Assembly (NCBI GenBank): GCA_976226885.1
Contig: OZ320317.1
Location: forward strand, 36,084,001 to 36,148,000
DNA: 64,000 nt
Source: Iphione sp. A-MEVVRFRX5
Lineage: Eukaryota
Direction of reading: 5' to 3'
Shown here: piece by piece, positions 15,301 to 60,402 of the stretch
Layout: the number at the start of each line of letters is the position of its first letter
Position numbering within the stretch: position 1 is the stretch's first letter
The notes under the pieces: model-generated
Databases searched by the model: none
What the model was told of the DNA's origin: nothing
The model's input: only the letters and a program-made list of their open reading frames with translations
Translations under genes and position numbers: made by a program

Positions 15301-15516
15301 AAAAAAGGTACCTTCTAAATTTCTTATGAATAACACTAGAGCGAAAAATCACACATGCTTCAGTTCCTATCTCTATAAAATATGCACATGGTCAACAAGC
15401 TTCTTAGGGTCTTTCCATGTAGAGCCATTTTGTCCGGGGTTTCATTCGTAAATGTCTATTTCCACACTTTTAGGTGGTGAGAAGACAGGCCTCGTTAACC
15501 GCAGGGTATCTACTTG

Positions 15517-15547
<31 letters not shown>

Positions 15548-20229: not shown

Positions 20230-20329
20230 NNNNNNNNNNNNNNNNNNNNNNNNNNNNNNNNNNNNNNNNNNNNNNNNNNNNNNNNNNNNNNNNNNNNNNN
20301 NNNNNNNNNNNNNNNNNNNNNNNNNNNNN
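20230..20329. other. Assembly gap (100 N, placeholder-sized) between duplication copies
   Basis: Run of exactly 100 N. Confidence 1.
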
Positions 20330-23122
20330 CACCTTGATTGGCACTTTGTTTTGGGGTGGTTGGGTGGGTCCTTCAAGTTTACAACCCTGAACACACACAA
20401 ACCTCAGTTCTGCCTGACTGAGCACACTATCCTCGGTTCGGCCTGACTGAGCACTAAACTGCTACAAGCTAATACTGGTAGAACAGAGGGATTGGTGAGT
20501 GTATGTGTATTGGTAGACCCTGGAATTCATAAACCAGGTATGTATGTTTTCAGGTGTGTTAGCAAAAGAGTACAATTGACATAACGTCACCTTATAAATA
20601 CTTGAATTACTACCAAAATTACCCAGTGCCATAGGACTATGTGTACAAAAATTAAGTATAACAAAATATCTATTAAATATGCAGAAATATGAAATCTGAG
20701 GGTCCAAAGTAGGCCTTAATAGCCATTGTACTTTTATTTCTATGAAAATCTGGTATTTTTGGCTGTAACATTCCTATTTATCTCTTGCTGTAAAAAACGC
20801 TATTCCTGCTATCCTGTTACATAAGATCTTAGTGAAAAACAATCAAACTGCTTGATATCAAAAAACTCATTTTCATTGCTACTTGCACTGGCCGGCTGTC
20901 ACCATGACAACTAGCCACTCCCCTTCCACAGGGGCAAAAAATTTACACTTATTTAGGCAAGACAATATTGTTACTTGAAGAAAATGTTTGTTACTTGAAG
21001 AAAATGTTCAATCAAGAAAATGTATTGATAACTTATTTATATGTATGACTTTAGTCCGTTTTTTTTTCATATCAATTTGAGTTCATGCTTGTTAACATCC
21101 AAAAAAGTTACTGATGTCATCTTAATTTAAGATGTTGCCATGGTAAAAATGTTTGTAGGAAATATTTCCATCTTATAAGATGTCCCCTTATAGAATAAGT
21201 TAATGTAGTAGCTTAAATTATTCCTAAATTTAACCATGAAAACTACATATTTTTATATGGTTAGTACCTAGTATATGATAGAATATATAACCATTAGTTG
21301 CATATGCATAAACTTCTACCAGATAAAGTTATTTGACATTCACAATGAACAAGCTGATAGGCTGTTATTACATATGCTAACTAATAAAGCTAACTAGCCC
21401 ATAATTTATTCATGTGACATGAATCTCTTTAATGCAATTCGGACATGAATTGCCCATTTATCTAGCTGCATATGAAGTGCCTGTACTTATATGCCAAAAG
21501 TGGCAAACAATCGTATGGTTAGTCTGGAATGGGTTAAAAAAAAAAAAAGAGTAAGCAATATGATTCATACTTCAGCTCAAAGCAGAGATAACACCTCACA
21601 GACAGGGATCCATGTCTCTCTGCTCCTTTATCACCGACTTACTGAGATGACAAATCTTACCCATCTTACTGTCCATTTCAACTTGATGAATAAGCATGCG
21701 CTCCCCATTCCACTGTAAGACCTGGGTTTTAATCTTACCTAAGTTCATCTAAATGTCCATAGTACATTAAGTACATCATCATTACTCTCACTTCATGAGA
21801 GTCACCTTTGAGGCTGTTTCTGTCGCAGCACAGACATCCCGTTTGCTCTGATAGCTAGTATTTGAGGGGTACGACCGGTGACTTTCACACCGCAATATTA
21901 CATCACTTGCTTTTTTGTTTGTTTGATTTTTTAAAGATCGCGATTGACACCATCTAGTGTTAGATTGTGCGAATGGAGTGTTGCTTTTTGTTGTAGTGCT
22001 AATTTCCTGCAACACATAAACGTACCTTTTCATGACGGGTGTTGTAAATACACAAGTACATGTAGACCTATACATATGCAGATTATCGGCCCGGGAGCCT
22101 AAATGCTCGAACCGAAGCTACAGTACATGTACTGCCCTTTCGCACGCCCTTGCTCGGTATCGTCAGAGGTCGCGAGATTGTTTATACTCTGCAAATTCTC
22201 CCTTCTCTCATCATGATGACTCTGCGTTTATTACTTGTGTGGCCGAAGTGGCCCACATAGAAATTTACATGTGCGCGGGCGATCCGCTTATGTCTAGAAT
22301 GCTACCATAGCCGCAACTGCAACAGAATCACCCAATACAGGTACTTTCCGACAGGAGAGAAAAGACTCCTTTCGTGGAGGAAAAAAGAAACGAAACAATA
22401 ACACTTAAGCAAGAGGACCGGCGAAGGGAGACAATCTCTTGGGGATACCGTCGCAATATGCAGTTTTTCCCGTACAAATGACGTATTGTCGGAAGAATGG
22501 ACCTCCCCGGGAAAAGGCGACCAGGGCAGAAATTAATTGTCTTTACGGAGAGGAAAGGGTGAAGGTTAGGTGGAGACGGGCATCACTGCCGACTGTTGAT
22601 AGCCCATAATAATCCAATTTATAGTGAAGGATCTAGGAAGACGAAAGCGCTACTACTACACCGCCTGACAGGCCACAGGACAGCCAGCATCAGCATCACT
22701 AGATGCGACCGCTCCAGCGCAGTTGGGCGGGTGGGGGTGGGGTGGGGGGAGATCTTCGGGAGCCCTGGCTCGGTAAAGCCGACGGCGATGAAAGCCGTAA
22801 TGAACGCTGCCGAGGCAATGGCAATGGCAATGGCGGCCAAGATGGCAGCCAGCCGCAGCAGCGTTGACCTTGGTGTACGGCCACCAGGTTGCGGTAATTT
22901 TGGCGGATGGCAACTATTTGGAACCAACTCGCCGATTGTAAGGTAGTTAATACCCATGCAGAAAATAGCCACCAATGGCACCGTAAACAGAAATGTCAGC
23001 CGAAAGCCAATTGGGGGCTAAAAACGGCGCAACGCTCTGTTAATGAAATGGAAGTTTGCAGCCATTGGAGGTCATGACTCAGATCCGCGGGGGCCGACAG
23101 CGATGGCAGCATCGGGCAAGCA

Positions 23123-23136
23123 GTTGCCATGGCAAC
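23123..23136. promoter_or_regulatory. Perfect RFX X-box (copy B)
   Basis: GTTGCCATGGCAAC, identical to copy A. Confidence 0.5.
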
Positions 23137-26100
23137 ACCGTCGAGCTCGTGTCACCTGGATACCGTAGTGGTGGCGTTTGCAAACCTCTTTCCTCCCTTC
23201 AACCTGCCAGTCTAGGAACGCGGACCTTGCACGTGAGACCTCCGATTACTGCATTGTTAAAAAGGAGGGGTCCCAGTATTCCAGGCACACTGCTCGTGCT
23301 AACAAACCGTTTCAGCCAAACAGGGCAAAAATTATCCCAAGTCTTAAAGCAGTCAAATGTGCTGGTTAGTTATCAGGTTGCTTGCCCCCGCCCCCCATCG
23401 ATTCCAACATCAGCCAAGGTAACAACAAAAGTTTTAAAAAAAAACCCACACAAGTCTCCTTTTTTCCAGATATGTGGTATTTATGACCAGTGGATAGCCA
23501 CAATGTTTAAAGGTAACTGTTTTAGTCTAAAAATATACGGCTACATGTATCCCCAACATTGTTCTGAGGCAGTATCGGAAAGGAATGTTATGCACATAGT
23601 TGGAGTCCTTAATAAAACACTTGAAGAACTGCTTATTACTTTTTGTTAAGCTTTTCCACATTACTGTTTTCCCTGCCTCAGCCACCATCCTTGGAAATGC
23701 ATACCAAGATCGCGGCTAACACCCATTCTAATAGTACAGACCATTAAGGCGTCGGACAACTGATGCTAGGACCCTTCATATTCCCAATGCTGATATGTAT
23801 GATCTAATATCGGCTATAATTAGTACCTCTGCATAAGAATTTAGGAGCTTGGCATTCTTTTTTTAGCGGATTACTGTTGCTAAGGTCAGCTGCAGCTGAA
23901 CACCTTTACGCCGCCCTAAAATAATGCTTGATGAAGGGAAGTGAGCAAAACCTTGAAAGCATACACTCCGTATATATTATACATCATTATTATACGAGAT
24001 GACACTGCTCTGTGAAAATTGTATTATGCAGAAATAACACCGCTCTGTGAAAATGATATCCGCATTTATTTCATACTGTTTGATACCCAGAGGACACCAC
24101 TGTGACAAGGGCGAACAATTCCCTTTTCACATGACTCTGCCTCGCAAAGGTATGCCTGAGCAAACGTTTTCGTTGTAGCATCAGCGGAGAAAGGATTACA
24201 TGTACTCTCTAGCCAATACAGTACTAACATCTCACAAATTAAATTTTTGTAACTAACTTAAATGGACAGGGTCAGGAATGGATCGTGAGAAGATATTGTT
24301 TATTGGTAGTTTGTGCATTCACTACATGAAACACTAGTGACCGACTGACACACACACACATACACAGTCTCACACTCACACACACACTCACTTCCTCCCC
24401 TCCCCTTCGTCACGTTTGTCCCTATACTTGTGCCCTATTCCATAGTCTCCCACCATTTGTCTCCCACCACTTCTTTATTTTGTTGGTAATCCAAATTAAA
24501 ACCAGTATTGATGTAAACTTATCTAATGGTCCATCCCTATACATGTACATGTTTAAACCTTCTGATTTTCTTTCTCCATTATCAAGGCACTACCTGAACG
24601 ATAAACACAACAGACCTCAGTCGCGTTATTCGATCAGGAGGTGCTCCCATACATGAGCAGGTACAGGATATAGCCCTCTCAAGCTGCGCCCCTAGACATG
24701 ATAACACAAAAGTGTCTGGCCTCAAACTCAATACAAGAAGCTGATCTGAGATAACCTGGGCGCTGACAGAACACTCATTTGACCTCGAAATCCAGGCACA
24801 ATGCCGCAGGGCCATCTTCCTGTGTCTGCAGGTATTCAATATAGAAACAAATGCAGCAGTAAACCAAGTAACAGTAACTAATGTCAGGTATAATGTTTTA
24901 ATGTAAAGTCAAAAGATACAGGAAAGTCTATTACTCCAAATGTGAACATGCTACCATTTGTACATGTACAGACAACATGTCGTCGTTTTGTTAGTTCCGT
25001 ATGATATTCACCATAATTCTTAAATGGGGCGGTTCCATGACACTAATTAAACCCATATATCATATATGGAATATACTCTCAGAGTCCCATTGAGGGACAA
25101 TTGTGAAATGCTGGAATTATTAAGCAGGAAATCAAAGATACAGATACTAGAAGATGATGTACTGTATCCTGTAGGTACTCCCTGTTACACTTCTGCAAGA
25201 ATTCTGACATGTAAATCATTTTTTTATTCATCCAAAAAAAAAGGGATAAATAGGGCTATGCGGAAGTAGGGCAGATGAGACGGCGATCGATATGGATGAC
25301 ACTGATATTTAGGTCGAGACTGGCGGCGAGAGCACAAGCGAGCATGGTACACGGCGCTATGCGTCAGCCTCCTTTCAGACGAGCAAACCCGTTTACAATC
25401 TAGACCGAACGTGGGCCATAGAGAGGCCCCAGGCTACTTTACCGCTGCCGCACTTGGGCATGCTATGCATAGGCACAGTGGCTACGTGACTCTAGTTCAT
25501 GTTGTGCTCATGTTCAAGTACGTGGGACACACATGGACAGGTAAATAACGCTACATATGCGGATAGACAAGAGACCACTGCGCCGTTTCTGCCCAGTGTT
25601 CTCCACGGGGGCTGGGGAAAACCCTACTTTTCTGGGTGTACGAGCTACAAGTCTGAACTGCAGTCCATGCATATTTGGATACAGTATTCATTAATGCAGA
25701 TGTATAACATTCTTATAAAAATGCATCTAAATTGCACAGGTATTTCCCTATGCGTACGTTTTAAACGTATATATCCCATATACGCATCATCCTGTTTTCT
25801 TGCCTGATTTAACCTGACTGACTCCACTGACTGTAAGTAAATCCTATCGCCAGGACGAACGGCCAAGCTGTTCCCCCGGTGGAAAGATGCACACCTGTAC
25901 AACAATGGCGACTACGACCCACTGTCTCAGTCGGTTACCTACCCGAATGCGATCCGGGCAGCAGAGTGCAAAACGGTGAATGTATACAGCCAACAGTAAA
26001 ATCTGAGTAGAAGCTACATGTTAACAAAACCATCAAGTGCATCAGTTAGAACTAGTTGTTATTGCTGTGGGCTAAGTTGTACTATTGGGCTGAATGGGAA

Positions 26101-26983
26101 AGGGATAGAATACATTGAAAATATTATTGCTAAAGATTGTCATATAAAAAAGGTACCTTCTAAATTTCTTATGAATAACACTAGAGCGAAAAATCACACA
26201 TGCTTCAGTTCCTATCTCTATAAAATATGCACATGGTCAACAAGCTTCTTAGGGTCTTTCCATGTAGAGCCATTTTGTCTGGGGTTTCATTCGTAAATGT
26301 CTATTTCCACACTTTTAGGTGGTGAGAAGACAGGCCTCGTTTACCGCAGGGTATCTACTTAAAAAAAAAAAAAAAAACCTACATGATAAGCACACAGGTG
26401 GTGGGGAGACTTTCTCAACGTGGAGAGGATCCGGAGTACATTTTCCCGCCAGCAAAACCGGGCTTGTGGTCGAGCGCTCTCCCATATCAGCGGTCACGTA
26501 GGCGTTACCTGGCGCCGACATGGCATGATTTCATGGTGTCTTGTACGTTATTTCCCTAAGAGGTACTTGCCCGCTCTATACCACTGACAGCCACTTTTTA
26601 CATTTTAATTTCACTTCAATTATTTTTAGGTGGGAAGGCGAAGAAAATGTCATGAGAATTGTTTGCAAGTCATGCTGCTGCTCAGGATATACAGTTCGAA
26701 CTTCTTCTATGGCAATACTTGTAAACTAGCGCCGATCTGTGTCAAATAAAGCTCATCTTCAACGCGGTGCTCAAACTGACCATTATGTATATCACGTAGT
26801 ATGGTGGTAGTCACATTCGTGCTCTACGAAAGAACGTTATAGACATTTCTGTAGAGAAACCCAAAACAGATCATTTTCATTTCATTGTGTCTTTTACCAG
26901 GAACTAGATATTCCCTATCGCATGACAGTCATGTTCCCCTGACTTCTGCATTTCAAGGGCAAATTTTGTACCACAACTCTTTA

Positions 26984-27856
26984 GACTCATTCTCAGTTAA
27001 GTCTGGCGTTTGGGGGTATGCACATGACAACAAAAATTCTCTTCTCAACATTTCATATTGATTTTCCAAAAGAAGACATGCAATGGAACATATTTTCAGT
27101 TAATTAGAACTCGGGCCATAGAAAAAAATTTTCCCACTATATTTCTCATATGTACATTGATGATTATGATGTAAATGACACATGATGTAAATGACAAAAA
27201 GCTATTAGCATTTTAGTTGTATTCTTCATCTCTGCTACAGGGGACCATTGCTTACTAATGATATGGCCATGACGTAAATGACAGCATTAAAAATACTGTC
27301 TGACACTGAAATGGTTATGATTAGCTGTCAATTAACATAAATGGACAGATTGTTTTAGTAAAGGTTTTTTCATGAAGAACCCCCAAATGCCAAATAACAG
27401 ATATAAACATTATACCTTCAGATTTCCTTTTTATTACTCATGATTTTCCTCATCATGATGTAAATGACAGTAAAACCACAGACATTAAACATTATTACAA
27501 AACTCAAATTTGGTAGGTACTATGATTGAAAGTTTTAAAATATGTTATTGACAGTTGTTAAATCTCTGTTAGGAACACCCTAAAATCCATTAGATAATGC
27601 ATTTGCAAACACTGTAGTATCTAAAATATATACATGCAATGCCTAAGACACACTGGTATTGTTGTACTGTATATATTCAAAATGATATTACTAAATATTA
27701 ATCAACATTTCTCTGGTACAATTGTACATCATATTAAGGAAAATCATGTCAGGAATCTGAAACTACCATCTGTTTTAATGGCAATATAAAATACAAGTCT
27801 TCACAGGAAAACAATGTCTAAGACATCGAATAGCCAGACTTAACTGAGAATGTATC
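26984..27856. mobile_element. Kolobok-like non-autonomous element (copy B)
   Basis: Same TIRs and flanks as 16151-17023. Confidence 0.6.
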
Positions 27857-30800
27857 TTAATAGTGTGGTATGTCTTTACCTGAGGGAGAATGATCTGTAT
27901 CCATAACCAAATTTTCTTAAGGAAAGATGCGATACTGTCATAACCATGGCATCGTAATTCTTCCCACTTTCAAAACAAGAATAAAAGAGAATGTATGTAA
28001 TTTTTCTTGTTTCAGGATAATTGGTATATGTGTATGCATATGTGCCCTGAAATCCTGATTTTTTAAAAAATCCATATTAACCCCGTACCTTGGTAGATTC
28101 TAAAACGTAAAAAGAAAAATTCAATATTTCCCACCATAATAATGTTATTATATGATTCATTATCCAAATGTGGACACTTGCATTGTGTTTGTACATTTAC
28201 AAATGTAATTGATTTTTATGTGTAGTCTATTTCATCAGATTCCTATTATTGATGAAAAATATCCAAAGTAGTAAACCATTCAGAGTGTTGGGACCACATG
28301 TTCCATTCGATTTTTACATGATATTGAGCTTCTTTAAAGATCCCACTCAAGCCCGCATATAGCTAAATAATGGGAACATAGAGGCTTATGATGGGTAGTC
28401 TCCTTATCCACTCCGCCCACATGTAGTAAAGGGATGAGAACAACTGATGTGCGAATCCTTTTTGAGGTTTTCACATCATTTCTGTTTTAATCTTTATCAG
28501 TTTGCAAGAATGATGTGCTAAGGACCAGAGCAGCTTGAAGGACATTTATACATGAAGTTATGATACGAATATTCATCATTATTTTTTGGCCAGATACTGC
28601 AGTAACAGAGGTTAAAGGGAATGTATCAAGCATTTGCGTGACAATTTCAATGATATGATCTGACGTTTTTATGTTACCCGACCAAATACATGCACTACCT
28701 ATAGAAATTAAATAATCCAAACGAGAAATTCAAACCAAAAATAAAGGACTTTCAAATGGACCACTGTACTAAAATTGGAAACGAGGATCCTTTAATATTA
28801 TAACTGTGCTGTATTCCACGGAAATAGGCAAATTTACATTTCGATAGGACTATGTGACAGTTGTCAATGGCTGTTACTACCACAATGAAGACTGAAAACA
28901 GAATTTAAGAAAATGCAGTGCAGATATACCAGTTCTAAGCTTAATGCTTAATGGTACAGTGGAATTTATTACGAAGGATGTCTTTAAACAGGCCAACTTT
29001 TGCATTTTGGTCAAATATACGGCTGCCTTAACTAGAGCGGACACGTGTTTCTCACAACAGCAACATTGCAAATAAGTGAAGGTGGTTGTAGAATCTGCTC
29101 AGAGATCAGGGAAAGTGTTAGCATTTATCACTAACCCATGAGACAAACCAGAGTGCCAAGTAGCAGTGGCTGACAAATGCCATCATGAACGGGAGGTTGC
29201 TCGCAGATCAAAGAGATTTCTGATTGCTTCATTCCCACACTTTTTCCTGGCCTTCTTACACCTCCCTAGCTGGCCTTCTTACACCTTCCTTTCTTGCCCT
29301 CTAGCCGCATATGTCCTTGTAACGTGAACGAACGGGACGGTTTGCTGGTTGCAGAGTATACATGTGGAAACAGCCGAGTAAATCAAACGCAAAGAGTCAT
29401 TTTCCAGCGCAAAATCAAGTGCTTGAAACAATTCCTCATATAGAGTTTGTTTTTTGTCAGGGGAGGGATCTGTGCTGAAGTAGAGCTTAGAGATCTTAGA
29501 TGATTACTGAAACACATGGTCCCTAAGTTCTGCCTCCTCTCAGTTTAATGACAAGGTTTCCAGCTCATTCAGACTGCCAGATTCATGAACGTTCTCATAT
29601 CTGCTAATCTGTGATTCATATTAAACCCCTAGCTGTTATCTTCGAACTGGAGATGAAAGACAGGCTTGCAGGGTTAGAAGACCTAAAAACTCTATAGGAA
29701 GCATCTAGATTTCATTTCACTAGTTGACAAGACTGAAGCACTGTCTAGGAAGCTTCTATATCAGTGTTTACAAGGAAGGAGATGCAGGAAAGTGGCTCGA
29801 ATGATTGCCATCCATCACGGGGAGGTACCAGATGCTGTCTTTGTAGTGGCCATCAGTGTATACTATACACGCTGGCAGTGAGGAAGAAGGAGGAGGAGGA
29901 CCAAGAGATTGATATTTTCGGTATCTGCGTCCGGTGAGGTGAGACGACACTGGCAATAACCATGGTCTTCACTCTCCCACCACCTAATGTCTGCTCTCAC
30001 TTTATGAAATCGATCCCAAAGAAAGATGATCTTTAAGCCCTGGAAATGCAAATGCTGCTTCACTCACTGCCCTCTCCCCCGCCTGGACCAAAGCATCATT
30101 CATTTCAGCCATGTCTTATCTGGGAAAGTACAGGCACAGGTAATGAATGAAGTGGATGAGACAGATGACCTCAAGTCTGTGATGGCAAAGGTGAACGGGC
30201 ATTGGATGATCACTGGATCAGAGACTTCATGAAAAGCCGTGAGGGTCTTCACAGTTGAAAGCTGCTTTGTCTGGTCCAGAATACAACCCTCCACTGAGTT
30301 GACAGAGGATAACGTGGATAACGCAGGAGATGTACAACCTATGGACTTCCTTAAAGGGTATCGACTTGCCTGCAGTCTACATGACCTCAAACGAGAACAA
30401 GGCCATAGTAATATCCACGCCCAGCCTACACTACAGATAAACGGGGAGACTGAGACTATGTCTTCAGAACATCTCAGACCAATATGAAGATAATGAAGAA
30501 ACTCCTCCATAAATGAAGTCTACTACATATGAAGACATCCAGGAGATGGTCACTGTCGTCGAGAACCACTTTCAGAGAACCACTAGTCATCGAGAACTAG
30601 TCATCGAGAACCACTAGTGATCTGAACTAGTTAGAGGGACAGCTCAGAGATCAGCAATGAAGGTTTAGTAAGAGCCACGATCCCTTACAACTCCCTAGAC
30701 AATTCTGCCATTCATACACCATTGGCAAACTCAAAGGCACTCACATATAGCGACTTAGAATTAGATTGTTGATACCTGGACCAATGCCAGGTCCCGAATG

Positions 30801-35600: not shown

Positions 35601-36439
35601 TACGATGTACATATGAACAGTTTAGGCGAGGATGAGAACGTAGGGAGGGGTTCGCGCGAGTGGGAACTGAAGGGGGCAAGCCCATCATTTTCGCTGCTCC
35701 CAGTATGGCCGATCTATGCCACCCACACGGCCTCCGGACTGCCACCGGCCTCTGCTCTATGAGGCATGACAGATCGCTCAACTATGATCTTCTTCGAAAC
35801 CCACTGCAATCCTTCTCACAACAGTGTTCTATTTGTGTGGTTCTTATTGATTGATGTCTAAATTGTTAATAACTGGTAGCAAAACCTCCCAGACGCTTTC
35901 ACTGTTCGTAGTTATGAGATGAAAAAGAGCAGGCTTATAGCAATACATGTTTAGCAGCTATGCTGCACGATCTTTTAAGTGGTACGTCATCATGTAATGG
36001 TATTTTGCTTCACAAATGATATATTTTATTTCCAGTGAGATGCATCCCCAAGGCGTAGGGATGCAAACACGAAGCACAAACGGCCTCAGGTCAATGACCT
36101 CAACGACAACGACCTGGGTGGCCACCTGGCGTTCAAATAAATAACAAACAGTACTAGGGGTCCACCTGGTGATAGACGCATGATCGAAACTACGTCAGTA
36201 TCACCTCGCTATTATCTGGGTTTTTTTTTTTTTCAAGGAAATTAACTATAATGACGATGAATACTCTCCTTCTTCTTCTTCTTCTTCTTCATAAATACCC
36301 CCCCCCCAAGTTCTCTCATCCAAATGTCAGGTAAACGGAAACATAACGAGAGGATTGTAAACTACGCTAAACGGTAAACGTCCCCAATTAAATATTTACG
36401 CCCAAACCTGCCAGTTGCAAAATACACGTACATGTATAT

Positions 36440-36623
36440 TGTAGCGGAGGTACTCCGCAGTTACTAAGGTTCCGCAATTATCTAGTGCTCCGCCACTTAT
36501 GGCTACATGTATATAAGGAGGGTGTGCGGAGAAGTCAGTTCAGTTCTCGTTTTGACGTTGAATAAACAACACCTCTTCTACAAAGACGCCTTTATTGAAA
36601 TATGTTGAGGTCGGGTCGTAACA
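36440..36623 (+). repeat. 5' LTR (184 bp)
   Basis: TGTAGCGG...CGTAACA, identical by eye to 45293-45476. TATATAAGGAG at 36510-36520, AATAAA at 36561-36566. Confidence 0.98.
36444..36531. promoter_or_regulatory. GCGGAG site cluster in LTR U3/TATA region (predicted targets of the element's zinc fingers)
   Basis: GCGGAG at 36444 and 36526, CTCCGC at 36453 and 36488, variant TTCCGC at 36470. The first two form the palindrome GCGGAG-GTA-CTCCGC. Confidence 0.7.
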
Positions 36624-37906
36624 TTGGTGGCAGCGGTGGGATTGTGCCTTTCTCCGAGGCGGAGAATGAGACGTCCCCGCCGGCGGAGTCGGCGCTGGGT
36701 GCGGAGTCCTCCTCGGCGGCGGAACTCGCTGAAGTGGCGGAGACGCCGCTGGATGCGGAGAACGCGAGTGAGTTCCTAGTGGAGGTTCGAGGAGGGGCTA
36801 GGACCGTGCGGCCGAAGGAGGAGACGGAGGCTACCCCGGTCTCACGGAGGAGGGCACTCTCACCCCTTGACGGTGCTGGCGAAGGGATCGTGGTTGGGCG
36901 GTCCGCGACAGCACCACGACCCGGAACGGTAGAGACAGAGGTGAATAGGTTGAGGCGAGAACTCGAAGACCCTGGAAGCGACGAGGACTCGTCTGATGGG
37001 AGGGACTCCTCGAGCGATGAGGAATTGGTGGAAGCCAACCCTACAGAAGACCAGGCAGTACGTGGGTTGATGGACGAGCTGCGGAGGGTGATGGCTCCCG
37101 CCGAGAGGTCACGGCGATCAAGCATCAAGGCCGACACGTTCGATGGCACCACCTCACTACCAGATTTCCTTCACCATTACGAACTGGTTGCGGCGGCAAA
37201 TCGTTGGAATGATCGTGAGAAGGCCTTACAGTTGGGGGTATCCCTGCGGAAGGCGGCGCGGACGGCTTTGAGGAATGCCCAGGTCGACATGGATGAAGAG
37301 GGCGCGTATCAGAAGATTGTCAAGACCTTACAGGACCGCTTCCAGCCAGCCGACCAGACAGACGCTTATATGCAACAACTGAAGTATAGGCGCCAAGGAA
37401 AGAGTGAGAAGTTGGCAGACTTGGCCGATGATGTGGAACGCTTGGTGCGGCTCGCCTATCCAGAAGCAGCAGGCCAATGGAAAGACCGGATGTGCAGGGA
37501 ATATTTCCTGGGGGCGCTCGCCAATGAGAAGGAGAGGAAGTGGGTCACTCAAGCCCGAGTCACCACATTCAGGACCGCACTCTCGGAGGCCCAACTCGCA
37601 GAGTCGTATTACGATAGTAAGAAGGAGCGGAGCCCTCGGAGAGTTCACGCCATCGAAGCCCCTGGGGTTGCCCCCGCGGAAGGAGGTAAGGAGGCAACGT
37701 CTGGTTCCTGGCGACGCATCGAGGAACTGTTGCAACAACTTTTAAAGAAGCAGGAGGAAGTCATCGTCCCCAGGCGACAGAAGAAGAAAGGATGCTTCCT
37801 GTGCGATGACCCGGGACATTTCAAGCGGGACTGTCCGAAGCTGAAGGATGCTACTACCAGTCAAGCAAAGTCGGGAAACGGGGGACCGGCCGCTCCCAAT
37901 CAGTAG
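36602..37906 (+). CDS. gag: Gag (434 aa) with C-terminal CCHC zinc knuckle
   Basis: Capsid-like segment FDGTTSLPDFLHHYELVAAANRW... and CFLCDDPGHFKRDC at 37793-37834. The ATG at 36602 is the first ATG after the predicted TSS and has A at -3. Confidence 0.9.
   Translation: MLRSGRNIGGSGGIVPFSEAENETSPPAESALGAESSSAAELAEVAETPLDAENASEFLVEVRGGARTVRPKEETEATPVSRRRALSPLDGAGEGIVVGRSATAPRPGTVETEVNRLRRELEDPGSDEDSSDGRDSSSDEELVEANPTEDQAVRGLMDELRRVMAPAERSRRSSIKADTFDGTTSLPDFLHHYELVAAANRWNDREKALQLGVSLRKAARTALRNAQVDMDEEGAYQKIVKTLQDRFQPADQTDAYMQQLKYRRQGKSEKLADLADDVERLVRLAYPEAAGQWKDRMCREYFLGALANEKERKWVTQARVTTFRTALSEAQLAESYYDSKKERSPRRVHAIEAPGVAPAEGGKEATSGSWRRIEELLQQLLKKQEEVIVPRRQKKKGCFLCDDPGHFKRDCPKLKDATTSQAKSGNGGPAAPNQ
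36625..36643 (+). other. Primer-binding site complementary to tRNA-Leu 3' end
   Basis: TGGTGGCAGCGGTGGGATT, 1 nt after the LTR; complement of the recalled eukaryotic tRNA-Leu(AAG/UAG) end ...AATCCCACCGCTGCCA-CCA. Confidence 0.85.
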
Positions 37907-37919
37907 AGCGAGCGGCCGG
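37873..37919 (+). other. Programmed -1 ribosomal frameshift signal (gag-pol)
   Basis: G GGA AAC heptamer in the gag frame (37873-37879), 6-nt spacer, perfect 10-bp stem CCGGCCGCTC (37886-37895)/GAGCGGCCGG (37910-37919). The pol frame is -1 and open from 37810. Confidence 0.9.
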
Positions 37920-40900
37920 AGTTTGTGAGAGCCCCTCGACCCTAGAAGAGCACCTGCGTAGGGTGACGGTGGATGACGAAGGTTGGCGGCAAGTCCGGCT
38001 AGATGGCGACCCGGACAGGACGGGACGAGGAATCATCGTGAGCGGCTACGTTCAAGGTCAGAGGATTCAGTGGTTGGTGGACACTGGGGCCTCCCTCACC
38101 TTGCTGAGCGCGCGGAAGGCGGCCACCCTTCGCTTGGGACACCCAGAAGACGTGCCCGGACGAGTGTTGTGTGCGGATGGGAACCCCCTACAGGTGGAGG
38201 GACGCGTGGAGGTAGAGGTGACCCTCGACGGGGTCCGGTTACCGGTAACTGTGTTAGTGGCGAACATCGACTGTGACGGCATACTAGGCATGGACACTCT
38301 CACCCGTTGGAGAGCAGTGTTGGACACCTCTGCCTCTGTCCTACATCTGACGTTGCCCGCGGAAGCGCCTGCGAGAAGTCGATTGGTGAGGTTAGCCGAG
38401 GATACAGCAGTGGAAGGCGGTAGCATAAGTTATGCAGAGGTGACCCTGGAGCCGGGCACGGGTACCGCCGAGGAGGTCCTGGTGGAAGGAGCGGCGGGGT
38501 TTGAGGCCAAGACAGGAGTCCGCGTAGCCAGGTCGCTGTGGGAGGCTGACACCAGTACCGGCTGGGTGCCCGTGTGCAACCCAGGGTGTTCCCGCGTGCG
38601 TTTACGGAAAGGGATGGTGGTCGGACAGACCTCGGCCGTGAAGCTGAGTGCCCCGGAAGATGGACCGACAGAAGAGGTCAAGAGCTGCAAGCCTAGCCCA
38701 GCGGTCGAGCTGTTGAAGTCCAGTCTCCCCGACGAATTGTCGACCTCCGAGAAAGAAGCGATAGGGCAGATGCTGGAACGTTGTCGAGAAGTTTTCCAAG
38801 AAGAAGGAGGGTCGTTGGGACGTACCGACGTGATCGCGCATGGGATAGATACTCAAGGGCACTCCCCTCTTCGCCAGAGAGTGCGACGCCTTCCCCCCCA
38901 GAAGAGGAAGATCGTACAGCAGGAGATTGAGAGTATGATGAAGAAAGGCGTCATCGAACCCTCCACTAGTCCGTGGGCCTCTCCGGTGGTGTTGGTACGG
39001 AAGAAGGACGGCGGGTGGAGGTTTTGTATAGACTACCGCGGCCTGAACCGGGTTACCAAGAAGGACGCGTATCCTTTACCACGAATCGATGACACCTTAG
39101 ACGCTCTACAAGGGGCTACGTACTTCTCAGCCATCGACCTAGCTGCGGGGTACTGGCAAGTGAAGTTAAAGCCCGAAGACCGTGAGAAGACCGCCGTGTG
39201 TACCACCTCCGGATTATTCCAGTTTACCGTGATGCCATTCGGACTGTGTAACGCTCCATCGACGTTCGAGCGACTCATGGAGGCAGTACTTCGGGGGTTG
39301 GTAGGACAAACCTGCCTCGTCTACCTAGATGATGTTATTATCATAGGGAAGGATGTGAACGAGATGGTTGATCACCTTGAAGAAGTGTTCCTTCGGTTAT
39401 CCGCTGCGGGCCTGAAAGTGAAACCCAGTAAATGTCAGCTATTCCGAAGAGAGGTCGCTTACTTGGGACATCTAGTCTCAGCCGAAGGAGTTGGGCCCGA
39501 TCCGGGGAAGATTGCAGCAGTTCAGAAGTGGCCGCGGCCACGGTGTCTAACGGAACTAAGGAGCTTCCTGGGGTTATGCTCCTATTACCGGAGCTTTGTA
39601 AAAGGGTTTGCTATGTTGACTGCTCCCCTGAATGCCCTTCTACAGAAAGAGGCGGAATTCCGTTGGAATAGCGATTGCGAGACGGCGTTTGAAGACTTGA
39701 AGAATCGTCTCACGTCCGCTCCCATTTTAGGATACCCACGGCCCGACGGAAACCTTCATCTGGATACAGACGCCTCGGCCGGGGGCATCGGAGCGGTCCT
39801 TGCCCAGGATCAGGACGGCGTAGAACGGGTGCTCGCTTACGCAAGCCGGACCCTGACGAAGGCTGAGCGCAATTATTGTGTCACACGGAAAGAGCTATTA
39901 GCGGTGGTGTTCGGCTTGAGGAAATTCCGACCGTATTTGGGAGACCAACATGTGACTATTCGCACTGACCACAATTCCCTACGCTGGCTCTGTCAATTCA
40001 AGGAGCCGGAGGGGCAGCTGGCCCGTTGGCTCGAAGAAGTGTATACGTACAACCTCACCATCATTCACCGCCCTGGGCGGAACCATGGTAACGCCGACGG
40101 GTTGTCACGGGTGGAGTGTACACAGTGCGGACGCCGGGAAGTGACCGAGGAGACAGCCCGAGTTGGTTCAGTGCAGTTGGCCGAAGAAACTGGTAGCGCC
40201 CTTCAAGAAGCCCAATACGCCGAGCGGATGTCTAAGGCCCTGTTGCTTGCCCTCCGCGGAGGGGTTGAAGATGAAGAGCTGCCTGCCCCCTGCGATGCAG
40301 AAGAGCGCTGGCTTCTTGGAGAGAGAGCCAGGCTGGTAGAAGATGGTGGCGTCCTCCGTCGGAGATGGGAGAGAGAAGACGGGAGCGTGCTGTTGCAGAC
40401 CTATGTGCCTAGGGCTCTCCGACATCCCATCTGGCAACACGTACACGCTGGGCCGATGGGGGGACATCTGGGGATCAAGAAGACCGAAGGAGCTCTACGC
40501 CTGAGGTACTGTTGGCCCCATTTGCGGAAAGACGTAGAGTGGTGGGGACAGAGTTGTGTGACTTGCCAGCAGGTTAAGGCCCCATCGATCAAACACAGAG
40601 GACCACTACTAGCCCGCCCGGTGGCTGGCCCTTGGGAGTTCGTTGCCGTTGACGTCTGTGGTCCGTTCCCGCAAACGCGTCGAGGGCATCGGTTCATTAT
40701 AGTGGTCGCGGACCATTTTACCAAGTGGGTGGAAGCCTTCCCCACTCCTGACGGCACTGCCGAGACTACAGCCCGAGTACTTCTACAGGAAGTAGTGTGT
40801 CGGTTCGGCCCCCCACGAGCGGTGCATTCAGACCAAGGACGTAATTTCGAGTCAGCAGTGTTTCGGGAACTTCTGCAACTCCTCGGTATTGAGAAGTCCC

Positions 40901-43900
40901 GCACCACACCTTACCACCCACAAAGCGACGGGGTGGTGGAGCGGTTTAACCGAACCCTAGCGAAGATGTTGGCCGCTGTAGTAGATGAAGAACAATCTGA
41001 CTGGGATGAACGAGTTCCTTTCGTGGTTGCAGCATACCGGGCCACCCCCCATTCCAGTACGGGCTTCACCCCGAACTGGTTGATGCTCCACAGAGAGACG
41101 ACACTTCCGGCTGAATTGATGTTCGGTGCACCACCCGGGGAGGTGCCCCCCAGGGGGGAGTTAGTGAGCAGGACACAAGGACGCATCGTCGAGGCCTATC
41201 AGTTGGCGAGGGAGCGTCTCCAGAGATCAGCAGTACGTCAGAAGGATTACTACGACCGGCACGTGCGAAGTCAGACGTTTCAACCAGGGGCATTGGTGTG
41301 GTTGCTCAACCCCACGAAGAAAGTTGGACGTTCCCCGAAGTTAGAGAAGACCTGGCAAGGGCCCTGGATTGTCAGTGAGCGGCTATCAGACGTTGTTTAT
41401 CGTGTGAAGAACGGATCTAAGCAACGAGTAGTACATACAGATTTACTGAAACCTGCATCGCAGCCCCCGAGTGACAACGTCATAGGGGTGGTGAATATGC
41501 TGCGGACACGTAGCCCAGGGGCGCATGTCCCCGAGGGGAGACCACGAGTTGATGTGCAAGGAAGGACGAGAGAGGTCACGACGGGCCTTGTGGGGGGGCA
41601 GGGGGGGCTGAAGGACCCCCGGCCCTCCCCTCGTCTGCCCCTGCCGAGGGTGCATCACCAAACAGGGGGAGGACCGAAACCCCCACCTCGCTGGTATCGT
41701 CGGGACTCTGTGGTCCAAAAGAGAGAAGAACCTCCTCGGGACGCGAGCCGCTGGCTAGAAGGGGAGCGACCTCCCCCACCTTCTCGACGTGGCCCATGTG
41801 GGCCTGTGCGGGAGAATGCGGACCTCCCCACGGAAAGTAGATGGAAACCTCGGACACGCCTGGAAGGAGCATGGGTGAAACTCCTTGCCCCACTCCTTCA
41901 GAGAACTTACCTGGCAGGCATATTATCCAGACAAGGAGGCCGGAGAGGAGGAGATTACAGGTTCGGACGGTTGATGTGGAAGGTAAAGGGATTCAGAAGA
42001 AAGATGGATCAACGGTTAGGAAGCCTCACCACTACCGCGATCTTCGCTGAATTAGGCAGGTTGAACGAGGAACGCTACAGGAGGTCTCAAGCGTGGAAAG
42101 AAACTAATCTTCGTTCTCCGCACCATCGGCGGAGAAGGGCGGAGAATCGAGACGTGGCGGAGATCGAAGCCCAGGCGGCGAACGACACAAGAGCGGAGAA
42201 ACGTCGGCGACGGAGTTCTACCCCAGTGCGAGGAAATAAGAACAGGCGGGGAGAAGAAAACGATTGGAATCGACACGAAACCTTAGCCCATTTTCGGAGA
42301 AAACAACGAGGCGGAGGGTTGCATGATGACGACCCGCCGCTACGGCGGAGAAGCGAAAGCTCGCGTGGCACGAGATTCGAATGGACCAATCAGCGGCCGG
42401 CGGAGACAGGCCAAGGGCTATATAAGGAGAGCGTCGTGCGGGGTACCCTCCCCATTCGACAATTCGATTTCGTGGAATACAGAACTCGTGGCGGAGACAA
42501 AATCGACAGCGGTTCCTGTTTTGGTGCGGAGGGCGACAATTGGCGTGTCCCGACGGCTGCGCAGAAACGATCTTCGCTGGGGACCTTGCGAGGCGGAGAA
42601 TACGAGGGCGGCGGAGACTGGTGCGGAGAATACAGCGACGGCGGAGAATCGGGGACGTGCGGAGTAACAGGCGCCACTATGCCAGACTGCCAGTTTTGCT
42701 GCAGCGACTGTGGCTTGAAGTTCAAGCGCAAGGCCAATCTCATCAGGCACTTCAAGGTCCATGAGAAGAGTGGGTTCGGGCGACGATGCCCCGTGCCTCG
42801 TTGTCAAGGCAAGATATTCAAGAGAAGAGATGACTTCCGTCGTCATCTGCGCCGAGTACATCGAGACTACCCCCCACACTACCTGGCCCTGGGGCAGGAT
42901 GTAGATGTGGAGTTTTTGACGTATCGCCTGGTTGACGGGTCACTACAGGGGATTACTACAGAGGTGCCACCGCAGAGAGCCAGGGAGTTCGCCCGACAGC
43001 AGGAGGACGAGGCCTTCGAACGTGAGAAGGAGGCAGCCATGATGAGGGGAGAGGAGCCGCCGAGAAAGAAGAAGCGCTCGAAAATAGAGGACGATTCTGA
43101 AGACGAGAGTGGCGAGGATGAGGATTCAGAGCCGGACGATGATGACGGGGGAACATCCGCCTCTGGGAGTGGAGCGACGGCGACCCGACCTGCCGGTGAG
43201 AAGAGGTCAAGGGCGTCGTCTAGATCGGAGCCCCAGCCCTCTACTTCATCCTGTGCTGACCCTCAACCGTCCACATCAAGAGGCACAGGAGGGAAGAAGC
43301 GCCCCCCTTCGGCAGCCAGGGGGCGACCCGCAACACCTTCCCCTGGCTCATCCCCGGCGAGCAGCTGCACGCTGCACCCCCCCACAGTGACCAGCACCAG
43401 CGGAGTGGGGACAACACCGTGCAGCCTACCTGCCCCGCCCCGAGTGGCGCGGGCTACCACTACGGCCAGCACCCCCCAGACAGGCGGCATGCATCTCCAG
43501 CTGTGGGGGTTGGACTCTGAGAGCGTGCCCTCCACGCCTGCACTCACCCCTCAACTAGTCGAAGCTGCAAGGGTGAGCGAGTGGCGGCATCATCGTTCGG
43601 CAGAGGACGAAGGAAGAAGACGGCCAGGGTCTGGCACCCCAGCCTCTAGCACGGTCTCTCCGATCACCCCTGGCCGTGGGTGGGATTTATCAGATCCCCG
43701 TCGTCCTCGAGGGAGAGGCCTGGGAAAGAAGACGACGTCGCCAGCCCAGTCTCCCCCCTGGACCAGAAGCCGGGGACCCCCGACCCCTTCCACCCCTATG
43801 TCGGGGGTGTCTTCTAGTTACGCGGGTGCAGCAGAAGAACTGGACCGTCGACTCGAAGAGATGCGCTCCCCTTCGGGACTTTCGCCAGTGCCAGAGAGCG

Positions 43901-44898
43901 AAGAAGAGCGGACTTCCCCCAAGCGAACGGTGTTTTCGGTGACCGAGTCGGAGAGGGATGAGGGAGAAGTTCGCCCAGGAGCACCCAGCCGGGTGGGAGG
44001 CAAGACGTCTGGCGTGCCCGCGGCGGAAGCCCCACCTACACCGGGCGATCCCGACGAGACGGTCCCGAGGGACGGCTGTGGGGCTGCTGCAGGGTCCGCT
44101 AGGGCCCTCCCCCAGTCCCCGACGGTCGACTCCGAGGGCCACCGCGAGCCGCCATCTGAAGAGGCCCCCCCGAGCGGACGCAATTCGCCAGCCGGCAGCG
44201 ATGGAGTCCCACCTGGGGAGGAGGAGGGTGTCCCTCTTCCGCCTGATCAGCCATCCAGGCAACCCCGAGGGACTCCAAGAGAGGCTGGCCCGGACGCTGA
44301 CCCGGGCATCGTGGCGGCCCCGGAGGTTGGAGGCGACGGCAACTTGACAGCGGCTCACGGGTCCTCCCCCGAGAGGGAGGATCAACCTGCTGGGCCACTT
44401 GGCGTAGGGCCCGCCGATGCGGGTCCCACCGACGAGGGCGGCACCGAGGGCGACGAACAAGACATCGCGGATGAGGGCGACCAAGGAGACGCAGGGCCGG
44501 CTGACCAAGGGGCAGGCCCTCAGGCTCCCGCACGACCGCGGTGGCCTACCTGGTCAGTGCAAGAGGAGGACGAGCTCTACACCTGGGCGTATGGGCGAGC
44601 CCTCACAACGACTGAGCGACCCCCGGACGGCTGGCAGTTCTTGTCGGCTGTCACTCGAGTGAGGATGCAGCTCCAGGGGGCGAGGCCCCAAGTGCAGTTT
44701 GATCATCGAGCTGACTTCCGGCAAGTGGAAGAGACCCCCGGACAATCCATCTGGACGTGGTTTAGACTACGGTCCGGCCGGACCCAGGGTCCCCGGATGC
44801 GAGTATCCTATCAGGACGTTAGTGTCTCGGCACGAGACCTAAGGACCTCCACATTGGAGTGTGATGAACTGTTTTGCCAGGAAGAGGTTGGCCAGTAG
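37876..44898 (+). CDS. pol: Pol polyprotein (protease, RT, RNase H, integrase) with about 1140-aa in-frame C-terminal extension; entered by -1 frameshift
   Basis: PR DTG at 38080; RT YLDD at 39322-39333; RH DTDASAGGIG at 39763; IN H-H-C-C at 40444-40566 and D(40651)-D(40831)-35-E(40939); GPY/F-like WQGPW; typical IN end near 41460; no stop until 44896-44898. Confidence 0.93.
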   Translation, partial: KRGTGRSQSVERAAGVCESPSTLEEHLRRVTVDDEGWRQVRLDGDPDRTGRGIIVSGYVQGQRIQWLVDTGASLTLLSARKAATLRLGHPEDVPGRVLCADGNPLQVEGRVEVEVTLDGVRLPVTVLVANIDCDGILGMDTLTRWRAVLDTSASVLHLTLPAEAPARSRLVRLAEDTAVEGGSISYAEVTLEPGTGTAEEVLVEGAAGFEAKTGVRVARSLWEADTSTGWVPVCNPGCSRVRLRKGMVVGQTSAVKLSAPEDGPTEEVKSCKPSPAVELLKSSLPDELSTSEKEAIGQMLERCREVFQEEGGSLGRTDVIAHGIDTQGHSPLRQRVRRLPPQKRKIVQQEIESMMKKGVIEPSTSPWASPVVLVRKKDGGWRFCIDYRGLNRVTKKDAYPLPRIDDTLDALQGATYFSAIDLAAGYWQVKLKPEDREKTAVCTTSGLFQFTVMPFGLCNAPSTFERLMEAVLRGLVGQTCLVYLDDVIIIGKDVNEMVDHLEEVFLRLSAAGLKVKPSKCQLFRREVAYLGHLVSAEGVGPDPGKIAAVQKWPRPRCLTELRSFLGLCSYYRSFVKGFAMLTAPLNALLQKEAEFRWNSDCETAFEDLKNRLTSAPILGYPRPDGNLHLDTDASAGGIGAVLAQDQDGVERVLAYASRTLTKAERNYCVTRKELLAVVFGLRKFRPYLGDQHVTIRTDHNSLRWLCQFKEPEGQLARWLEEVYTYNLTIIHRPGRNHGNADGLSRVECTQCGRREVTEETARVGSVQLAEETGSALQEAQYAERMSKALLLALRGGVEDEELPAPCDAEERWLLGERARLVEDGGVLRRRWEREDGSVLLQTYVPRALRHPIWQHVHAGPMGGHLGIKKTEGALRLRYCWPHLRKDVEWWGQSCVTCQQVKAPSIKHRGPLLARPVAGPWEFVAVDVCGPFPQTRRGHRFIIVVADHFTKWVEAFPTPDGTAETTARVLLQEVVCRFGPPRAVHSDQGRNFESAVFRELLQLLGIEKSRTTPYHPQSDGVVERFNRTLAKMLAAVVDEEQSDWDERVPFVVAAYRATPHSSTGFTPNWLMLHRETTLPAELMFGAPPGEVPPRGELVSRTQGRIVEAYQLARERLQRSAVRQKDYYDRHVRSQTFQPGALVWLLNPTKKVGRSPKLEKTWQGPWIVSERLSDVVYRVKNGSKQRVVHTDLLKPASQPPSDNVIGVVNMLRTRSPGAHVPEGRPRVDVQGRTREVTTGLVGGQGGLKDPRPSPRLPLPRVHHQTGGGPKPPPRWYRRDSVVQKREEPPRDASRWLEGERPPPPSRRGPCGPVRENADLPTESRWKPRTRLEGAWVKLLAPLLQRTYLAGILSRQGGRRGGDYRFGRLMWKVKGFRRKMDQRLGSLTTTAIFAELGRLNEERYRRSQAWKETNLRSPHHRRRRAENRDVAEIEAQAANDTRAEKRRRRSSTPVRGNKNRRGEENDWNRHETLAHFRRKQRGGGLHDDDPPLRRRSESSRGTRFEWTNQRPAETGQGLYKESVVRGTLPIRQFDFVEYRTRGGDKIDSGSCFGAEGDNWRVPTAAQKRSSLGTLRGGEYEGGGDWCGEYSDGGESGTCGVTGATMPDCQFCCSDCGLKFKRKANLIRHFKVHEKSGFGRRCPVPRCQGKIFKRRDDFRRHLRRVHRDYPPHYLALGQDVDVEFLTYRLVDGSLQGITTEVPPQRAREFARQQEDEAFEREKEAAMMRGEEPPRKKKRSKIEDDSEDESGEDEDSEPDDDDGGTSASGSGATATRPAGEKRSRASSRSEPQPSTSSCADPQPSTSRGTGGKKRPPSAARGRPATPSPGSSPASSCTLHPPTVTSTSGVGTTPCSLPAPPRVARATTTASTPQTGGMHLQLWGLDSESVPSTPALTPQLVEAARVSEWRHHRSAEDEGRRRPGSGTPASSTVSPITPGRGWDLSDPRRPRGRGLGKKTTSPAQSPPWTRSRGPPTPSTPMSGVSSSYAGAAEELDRRLEEMRSPSGLSPVPESEEERTSPKRTVFSVTESERDEGEVRPGAPSRVGGKTSGVPAAEAPPTPGDPDETVPRDGCGAAAGSARALPQSPTVDSEGHREPPSEEAPPSGRNSPAGSDGVPPGEEEGVPLPPDQPSRQPRGTPREAGPDADPGIVAAPEVGGDGNLTAAHGSSPEREDQPAGPLGVGPADAGPTDEGGTEGDEQDIADEGDQGDAGPADQGAGPQAPARPRWPTWSVQEEDELYTWAYGRALTTTERPPDGWQFLSAVTRVRMQLQGARPQVQFDHRADFRQVEETPGQSIWTWFRLRSGRTQGPRMRVSYQDVSVSARDLRTSTLECDELFCQEEVGQ
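42129..42664 (+). promoter_or_regulatory. Putative internal promoter with CCAAT box, TATA box and 14 GCGGAG sites
   Basis: CCAATCAG at 42386-42393; TATATAAGGAG at 42419-42429 (same 11-mer as the LTR TATA). GCGGAG at 42129, 42139, 42157, 42193, 42311, 42345, 42400, 42491, 42526, 42593, 42611, 42623, 42641, 42659. Confidence 0.75.
42679..44898 (+). CDS. Putative element-encoded C2H2 zinc-finger transcription factor (739 aa), in frame with pol
   Basis: ATG in GCCACTATG context, the first ATG after the internal TATA. ZF1 CSDC-x3-F-x5-L-x2-H-x3-H (42700-42762); ZF2 CPVPRC-x4-F-x5-F-x2-H-x4-H (42787-42861). NLS-like PPRKKKRSK (43057-43083), acidic tract, long P/S/T/E-rich region, aromatic-rich C-terminal ~120 aa. 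Confidence 0.8.
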   Translation: MPDCQFCCSDCGLKFKRKANLIRHFKVHEKSGFGRRCPVPRCQGKIFKRRDDFRRHLRRVHRDYPPHYLALGQDVDVEFLTYRLVDGSLQGITTEVPPQRAREFARQQEDEAFEREKEAAMMRGEEPPRKKKRSKIEDDSEDESGEDEDSEPDDDDGGTSASGSGATATRPAGEKRSRASSRSEPQPSTSSCADPQPSTSRGTGGKKRPPSAARGRPATPSPGSSPASSCTLHPPTVTSTSGVGTTPCSLPAPPRVARATTTASTPQTGGMHLQLWGLDSESVPSTPALTPQLVEAARVSEWRHHRSAEDEGRRRPGSGTPASSTVSPITPGRGWDLSDPRRPRGRGLGKKTTSPAQSPPWTRSRGPPTPSTPMSGVSSSYAGAAEELDRRLEEMRSPSGLSPVPESEEERTSPKRTVFSVTESERDEGEVRPGAPSRVGGKTSGVPAAEAPPTPGDPDETVPRDGCGAAAGSARALPQSPTVDSEGHREPPSEEAPPSGRNSPAGSDGVPPGEEEGVPLPPDQPSRQPRGTPREAGPDADPGIVAAPEVGGDGNLTAAHGSSPEREDQPAGPLGVGPADAGPTDEGGTEGDEQDIADEGDQGDAGPADQGAGPQAPARPRWPTWSVQEEDELYTWAYGRALTTTERPPDGWQFLSAVTRVRMQLQGARPQVQFDHRADFRQVEETPGQSIWTWFRLRSGRTQGPRMRVSYQDVSVSARDLRTSTLECDELFCQEEVGQ

Positions 44899-45280
44899 CT
44901 TCAGTAAGACTCTTCAAACCGTAAGTTACCTCTAAGATATTGTTTTTAAGAGTGGCTAGTATAGGCCATTGGTCTAGAATTAAACGAGGTCTCGTGCCAT
45001 ATACTTTAGAACTTAGGACAAGAAGGACTTGCATACCGTCGCTTTAGCTATGTGATATTCACTTCAGATTTGAGTAGAATAAGTAACTTAGAGAATAGCA
45101 GTCAAGTACATGACAGAATTGGTTAGCGTGTTACTGCTGTCCAGTTGGACAATTATTTTCTTGCATGGGCCTGCCCAGTCCAAGGTGGGAACCCTCCTTT
45201 TCCCTCCAGGATTATTCTGTGTATGTTAAATCATTACCTACATGTAAGATCGGACTTACTCAGGGACTGAGTTAGATTTT

Positions 45281-45292
45281 AGGAGGGAGTAG
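45281..45292 (+). other. Polypurine tract
   Basis: AGGAGGGAGTAG immediately before the 3' LTR. Confidence 0.9.
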
Positions 45293-45476
45293 TGTAGCGG
45301 AGGTACTCCGCAGTTACTAAGGTTCCGCAATTATCTAGTGCTCCGCCACTTATGGCTACATGTATATAAGGAGGGTGTGCGGAGAAGTCAGTTCAGTTCT
45401 CGTTTTGACGTTGAATAAACAACACCTCTTCTACAAAGACGCCTTTATTGAAATATGTTGAGGTCGGGTCGTAACA
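45293..45476 (+). repeat. 3' LTR (184 bp)
   Basis: Identical by eye to the 5' LTR; AATAAA at 45414-45419. Confidence 0.98.
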
Positions 45477-46439
45477 ATATGAATGTATCCTAACGATCAA
45501 AGCTGAACTAAATAGAGGTGTATTACAGTGTCCTATCTTGCTTGTGAATTTAGTTATTTTCTTTATTCTGGTACCATTTCTTACGTTTCAAAAGGGAAAC
45601 AGGAGGGTACATGCCCACCTCAAACCGTGCGTGTCAGGGACAAACCCCAGTTATCACCCCCAGTCCATGGGTCCATGGGTTCCATGGGTACAAAGAACAG
45701 CTTCAGGAGCCTGGCGTTCACTGCCTACGAAAGGTTTTTGACAGATGCATGAGATGTATTCAGGCATATTTAGAGCATTTCATAGATACGGCTTCGCTGA
45801 AATAAGTGTCCCAGACCAAAGGAATATTCTTGTTGAAAGTATCATTCCCAGTTCATACCACGATAGTGAAATCCCTTGTTCGCCACTTACAGAACAAGAA
45901 CGTTTCATATAGATGCACATAATACGTAGTCTGCTAGAACTTATACCAACAATATGAGTTGTACACAAGGCAATTACATTCGCGCTATTTACTGAGAGTT
46001 AAGTACGCACACCATTAAAAATCTTCCTACAACTCTCTTGCACCGCCTGACAAATTTAGGAATCGATGAGGGGAACCGGGGAGATCCACCTGTATCGATG
46101 TCATTAGTTCATCTTCATTAAGTTGTGGCAGATAGATGAAACCATTGGTCTCACTAGCGATGCGACAACTCAAGCTTCCTACCAAAGCTGTCCATGACTT
46201 TTTTTTCAGGGACAATACCACTAATTCGTGTGTGTCTGGTGTCATCTTCATACAGGAGTTTCATAGGAACAGACTGTCCCCATTTGATAACCCAACCTAC
46301 AACCAGCGGCAGACACAGACGGCCTGACGGAAGGTAAAGTACCATCTACACGGACATGTACTGCATCTTGGAGAGGAAGAGTCAGCCTCGCCACGAGTTG
46401 TTTATACCATGGGCCACGAAGGAGATAAGCAGTACTTAC

Positions 46440-52230: not shown

Positions 52231-52475
52231 NNNNNNNNNNNNNNNNNNNNNNNNNNNNNNNNNNNNNNNNNNNNNNNNNNNNNNNNNNNNNNNNNNNNNN
52301 NNNNNNNNNNNNNNNNNNNNNNNNNNNNNNNNNNNNNNNNNNNNNNNNNNNNNNNNNNNNNNNNNNNNNNNNNNNNNNNNNNNNNNNNNNNNNNNNNNNN
52401 NNNNNNNNNNNNNNNNNNNNNNNNNNNNNNNNNNNNNNNNNNNNNNNNNNNNNNNNNNNNNNNNNNNNNNNNNNN
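52231..52475. other. Assembly gap (245 N)
   Basis: Run of N. Confidence 1.
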
Positions 52476-59756: not shown

Positions 59757-60402
59757 NNNNNNNNNNNNNNNNNNNNNNNNNNNNNNNNNNNNNNNNNNNN
59801 NNNNNNNNNNNNNNNNNNNNNNNNNNNNNNNNNNNNNNNNNNNNNNNNNNNNNNNNNNNNNNNNNNNNNNNNNNNNNNNNNNNNNNNNNNNNNNNNNNNN
59901 NNNNNNNNNNNNNNNNNNNNNNNNNNNNNNNNNNNNNNNNNNNNNNNNNNNNNNNNNNNNNNNNNNNNNNNNNNNNNNNNNNNNNNNNNNNNNNNNNNNN
60001 NNNNNNNNNNNNNNNNNNNNNNNNNNNNNNNNNNNNNNNNNNNNNNNNNNNNNNNNNNNNNNNNNNNNNNNNNNNNNNNNNNNNNNNNNNNNNNNNNNNN
60101 NNNNNNNNNNNNNNNNNNNNNNNNNNNNNNNNNNNNNNNNNNNNNNNNNNNNNNNNNNNNNNNNNNNNNNNNNNNNNNNNNNNNNNNNNNNNNNNNNNNN
60201 NNNNNNNNNNNNNNNNNNNNNNNNNNNNNNNNNNNNNNNNNNNNNNNNNNNNNNNNNNNNNNNNNNNNNNNNNNNNNNNNNNNNNNNNNNNNNNNNNNNN
60301 NNNNNNNNNNNNNNNNNNNNNNNNNNNNNNNNNNNNNNNNNNNNNNNNNNNNNNNNNNNNNNNNNNNNNNNNNNNNNNNNNNNNNNNNNNNNNNNNNNNN
60401 NN
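59757..60402. other. Assembly gap (646 N)
   Basis: Run of N. Confidence 1.

Follow-up and report, generated by a model that had tools for sequence, protein, structure and literature searches.

Can an LTR retrotransposon encode the regulator of its own transcription? This question is raised by a locus within a 64,000-nt stretch of contig OZ320317.1 of Iphione sp. A-MEVVRFRX5 (hereafter the window; all coordinates refer to it), where an initial annotation had proposed an internal promoter that copies the TATA of the LTR, is embedded in coding sequence and bracketed by seven plus seven GCGGAG sites, and would drive a ~3-kb subgenomic mRNA autoregulated by its product. We found that the underlying observation is correct. 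The interpretation is only partly supported, and the predicted product can also be made without any subgenomic RNA.

A Ty3/gypsy-type element

The locus lies in a 9,037-bp Ty3/gypsy-type LTR retrotransposon (36440-45476), all of whose features described below are on the + strand unless indicated. The element looks intact and very young. Its two LTRs (36440-36623 and 45293-45476, a small correction to the limits first given) are 184 bp long, identical at 184/184 positions, end in TG..CA, and are flanked by a 4-bp ATAT target-site duplication (36436-36439 and 45477-45480). ATAT is one of the palindromic targets reported for gypsy-group elements of Drosophila (PMC5408687). The 11-mer TACATGTATAT (36429-36439) spans the last ten bases of host flank and the first base of the 5' LTR, and recurs just before the LTR TATA (36504-36514), so the element may have landed in a sequence resembling its own TATA region, or this may be chance. 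A primer-binding-site-like stretch starting with TGG, inferred from its position, lies one base after the 5' LTR (36625-36642), and a polypurine tract abuts the 3' LTR (45281-45292).

The element codes for a Gag of 434 aa with a CCHC knuckle (36602-37906), followed by pol proper (37810-41454), whose frame opens 97 nt before the gag stop, in the -1 frame. Pfam hits to protease, reverse transcriptase, RNase H and integrase appear in that order, up to about residue 1164 (nt 41454). No stops or frameshifts were seen in gag or pol. The best Pol relatives are gypsy-type proteins of arthropods, fish and environmental contigs, at 44-52% identity. No other copy or relic of the element is present in the window, at either the DNA or the protein level, and six other long ORFs in the window gave no Pfam match. 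The stretch between the end of the last ORF and the 3' LTR (44899-45292) is AT-rich (GC 0.41, CpG observed/expected 0.44), which resembles the host flanks and differs from the rest of the element (GC 0.57-0.64).

GCGGAG arrays

All 14 + strand GCGGAG sites reported between 42129 and 42664 were confirmed, seven upstream and seven downstream of 42419, spanning 536 bp. Dinucleotide shuffles of the 550-bp block give 0.8 +/- 0.9 copies, with a maximum of 5, and the commonest hexamer of any kind in a shuffle reaches at most 8. However, the sites are not strictly on one strand, since a minus-strand copy at 42116 abuts the block and forms an inverted pair with that at 42129, bringing the block (42116-42664, CpG observed/expected 1.43) to 15 sites. 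The statement that only isolated copies occur in the PR-RT-RH-IN region also holds, this region having only one overlapping +/- pair at 40252/40256.

The initial annotation had dismissed a peptide repeat because the sites occupy all three reading frames. We confirmed this, as relative to the open frame they fall 5, 7 and 2 in the three phases, although the last five share one phase. Moreover, the same hexamer clusters elsewhere in the element. Each LTR has four copies on both strands around the TATA (in the 5' LTR, 36444+, 36453-, 36488- and 36526+), of which the first two form a head-to-head palindrome (36444-36458) lying 5-19 bases from the U3 tip of each LTR, close to where integrase acts. 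The leader has a further five + strand copies (36659-36760), spaced 24, 18, 36 and 18 nt. These are all read as Ala-Glu codons in the N-terminus of Gag, whereas the internal ones fall in other phases, which indicates that the constraint is on nucleic acid and not on peptide. An enrichment test against the rest of the element, which the initial annotation had called for, showed that 28 of 33 copies lie in 1.1 kb of LTRs, leader and internal block (24.9 against 0.63 per kb, about 40-fold; Fisher p 4e-21). GCGGAG is the commonest hexamer of the whole element, and its extended form is K-GCGGAG-A-M.

The block might be a by-product, without function, of slippage expanding an 18-nt unit. In fact, an 18-nt tandem array is called at 42621-42664, and an 18-nt spacing recurs six times. 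However, only the hexamer is conserved between units, not the spacers, the same hexamer recurs in three separate blocks and on both strands in U3, and the reading frame stays open through the block. We therefore consider this possibility very unlikely.

The motif might also act in RNA, forming purine-rich single-stranded platforms (GGAGA-type splicing enhancers, export or packaging signals), with the downstream ORF being reached by splicing. Consistently with this, 19 of the 20 sites in the leader and internal arrays are on one strand, which a double-strand binder does not require, and the internal arrays are unstructured as RNA (z +0.9). In addition, a GTGAGT donor-like site at 36768 directly follows the leader array, and one strong acceptor-like site is present at 41902, 225 nt before the internal block. 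However, the U3 sites lie upstream of the transcription start and on both strands, seven internal sites lie upstream of the TATA, the phases of donor and acceptor do not join gag to the frame of the downstream ORF, and we could not find any shared RNA fold, nor any Rfam or tRNA hit. An RNA-level role thus appears unlikely.

A predicted two-finger DNA-binding protein

The ATG at 42679 opens an ORF of 739 aa (ORF3, 42679-44898), which begins, five codons later, with two C2H2 zinc fingers (42700-42861; ORF3 residues 8-28 and 37-61). These have the Cys2-His2 spacing and conserved hydrophobic residues of the family and score above the Pfam cut-off (PF00096, 36.7 bits against 25.2, in two stretches), and a short model shows a predicted beta-beta-alpha fold twice. 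However, the linker between the fingers has 8 residues and is not of the canonical TGEKP type, and finger 2 has an unusual 13-residue Cys-His spacing. A fold search with this model gave only non-significant C2H2 neighbours, among the nearest being the two-finger binders ZFP57 and Tramtrack (4gzn, 2drp), which show that two fingers suffice to read a hexamer, but with which there is no specific sequence kinship and whose contact residues differ.

The helix register was fixed by alignment to PRDM9, Aart and ZNF568 chains, in agreement with the helix starts at residues 18 and 50 in the model. Positions -1, 2, 3 and 6 are R,A,N,R in finger 1 and R,D,D,R in finger 2. Published tables pair RNR with GAG and RDR with GCG (PMC5260074), and the N-terminal finger reads bases 4-6 of a two-finger hexamer (PMC4005693). 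The predicted site is therefore GCG-GAG, which is exactly the enriched hexamer. Although the recognition code remains a prediction, this is the strongest evidence that arrays and protein belong together, and we consider such a self-binding link fairly likely. It gives a concrete basis to the proposal of regulation by the product. Alternatively, the arrays could be sites for a host factor, acting as an enhancer or insulator like the Su(Hw) site cluster in the gypsy leader, with the fingers unrelated to them. Site clusters occur in the leaders of gypsy-type elements, and the mixed orientation of the sites in U3 is typical of enhancers. However, this would need a coincidence, the element's own two fingers decoding to the very hexamer that is enriched 40-fold, and appears unlikely.

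Downstream of the fingers lie a basic nuclear-localisation-like heptad followed by a 20-residue acidic tract (43063-43146; both inferred), and a long Pro/Ser/Gly-rich region, most of ORF3 being predicted disordered. The full-length ORF3 model was too poor to use (pLDDT 39). Protein searches with ORF3 and with the post-integrase part found nothing beyond generic fingers, with no relative of the remainder among 1.8 billion representative proteins, and Pfam at E up to 1 gave nothing for the C-terminus of ORF3 or the post-integrase stretch.

The finger protein as the tail of Pol

The initial annotation recorded only that the proposed promoter lies in coding sequence. We found that the ATG at 42679 is in frame with pol, with no stop in between, so that a single 2311-aa ORF runs from protease to the fingers and beyond, ending at 44898. 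The intervening Arg-rich extension (41455-42115) has no family match and no stops. Chance does not explain this openness: the other two frames carry 26 and 38 stops over 41455-44898, and in shuffles the probability of no stops is 0.004 for the motif block and below 0.001 for the stretch before it. The promoter-like block is therefore truly coding, and the fingers can be made as the tail of Pol.

This leads to the main rival reading, in which the fingers are solely a DNA-binding tail of Pol/integrase, traveling in the particle and holding the enzyme or the pre-integration complex on the element's own DNA copy, or steering integration, while the internal TATA is incidental. The site pair near the LTR tip would fit this view, and retroelement-encoded C2H2 fingers that pick DNA targets exist in R2-type non-LTR elements. 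However, it does not explain an 11-base copy of the LTR TATA, the like-spaced downstream arrays, or a well-placed ATG five codons before finger 1. There is no GCGGAG within 1.5 kb of this insertion in host DNA, so site-directed integration is not supported, although this is one insertion only. Moreover, none of the 120 best Pol relatives lists a C2H2 domain. We therefore regard this reading as doubtful.

A possible internal promoter

We scanned the element with generic consensus patterns for TATA, initiator, CCAAT, poly(A) and splice donor signals. The 5' LTR has a TATA (36510-36520), an initiator-like TCAGTT twice (36535-36545), and AATAAA at 36561. The TATA 11-mer TATATAAGGAG occurs three times in 64 kb, in the two LTRs (36510 and 45363) and at 42419-42429, against 0.03 expected, and the internal copy is the only TATAWAW match in the interior of the element. 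It is followed at +19 by a one-mismatch site (GCGGGG). The two modules share a layout, each with the TATA, a site or near-site 16-19 nt later, and an array ending about 240-245 nt downstream, the downstream arrays sitting at similar distances from the two TATAs (+173/+191/+227/+245 against +174/+192/+222/+240). However, the LTR plus leader and the internal block do not align beyond the TATA and the hexamers, which rules out a simple duplicated LTR. The ATG at 42679 is the first after both 42381 and the TATA, and has A at -3. No AATAAA occurs before the 3' LTR, where that at 45414 would end a roughly 3-kb internal transcript. The CpG excess of the block also favors a promoter.

Other elements of the proposal are weaker. 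The ATG-free leader, taken as a supporting feature, is not exceptional, as the 298-nt ATG-free stretch is only the seventh longest in the element. The CCAAT at 42386-42390, 33 nt upstream of the TATA, could be chance. The TCAGTT initiator of the LTR is not copied, and the candidate is a weak initiator-like CCCATTC (42451-42457), a putative transcription start whose A lies 35 nt after the start of the TATA. An active internal promoter, inferred here from sequence signals alone, thus remains tentative.

Taken together, our preferred explanation, which we consider about as likely as not, is that the 550-bp block is an array of binding sites for the element's own two-finger protein, built around a second TATA-type core promoter inside the long 3' extension of the pol frame, with a matching module at the 5' end. 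In this view, the finger protein would be made in small amounts as the tail of Gag-Pol, and probably in larger amounts from a roughly 3-kb RNA starting near 42450 and ending at the poly(A) signal of the 3' LTR. It would then enter the nucleus, occupy the arrays and regulate both promoters, activation being more likely than repression because an acidic tract follows the basic nuclear-localisation-like motif. A two-finger domain reads only six bases and binds weakly, which would explain why many sites are clustered. While the motif statistics, the layout, the open frame and the finger register come directly from our analysis, binding, transcription from the internal start site and the direction of regulation are inferred, from the sequence of a single copy.

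Relation to other systems

Promoters inside coding regions have precedents. In the gypsy-like Tor elements of Oikopleura, 5' RACE showed that a third gene is transcribed from a promoter (Penv) in pol or just after it (PMC4402516), but this gene codes for an envelope protein, and no self-encoded DNA binder or site array is described. In foamy viruses, a promoter lies inside a coding region upstream of the gene for the regulator Tas, which is needed at both the LTR and the internal promoter (PMC8670036; PMC13220597). Here, the hexamer matching the predicted finger specificity clusters at both places, with more sites in the internal block (15) than in the LTR plus leader (9). However, the present element is a Ty3/gypsy-type retrotransposon with no envelope-like ORF, and its putative regulator is a C2H2 finger pair fused in frame to Pol, for which searches returned only generic C2H2 hits and no homology to Tas.

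In gypsy, a cluster of repeated zinc-finger-protein sites lies just downstream of the primer-binding site, but the binder is the host protein Su(Hw) and the motif differs. The likeness is one of layout only, as the arrayed motif here is GCGGAG, its predicted binder is element-encoded, and a second array surrounds an internal TATA. Finally, En/Spm TnpA and the Ac transposase are element-encoded proteins that bind many short repeats on both sides of the element's own transcription start and regulate it, but these are DNA transposons with unrelated proteins.

LTR retrotransposons are thought to depend on host factors for transcription, and self-encoded activators with internal promoters are regarded as a hallmark of complex retroviruses. 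We tentatively propose that a Ty3/gypsy element may have become "complex", encoding its own sequence-specific C2H2 transcription factor, seeding the six-base site in arrays at its LTR, leader and a second internal promoter, and so running a self-contained feedback circuit, a design otherwise known in retroelements from foamy viruses, with unrelated parts. Our literature searches found no such case in a gypsy-type element, although this is only a negative search. If confirmed, it would show that such circuits arose independently outside retroviruses, and would be a natural case in which a protein's recognition code and its sites can both be read from one 9-kb sequence. It would also caution annotators that long "Pol" tails can hide regulators.

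Other features of the window

Outside the element, the window contains a direct duplication of about 12 kb (8121-20229 and 20387-29759), whose copies are 96-99% identical and each preceded by a run of N. The first copy carries an extra GC-rich tandem array of a 71-78-nt unit (10612-11036). In total, four runs of N are present, at 7660-7851, 20230-20329, 52231-52475 and 59757-60402.
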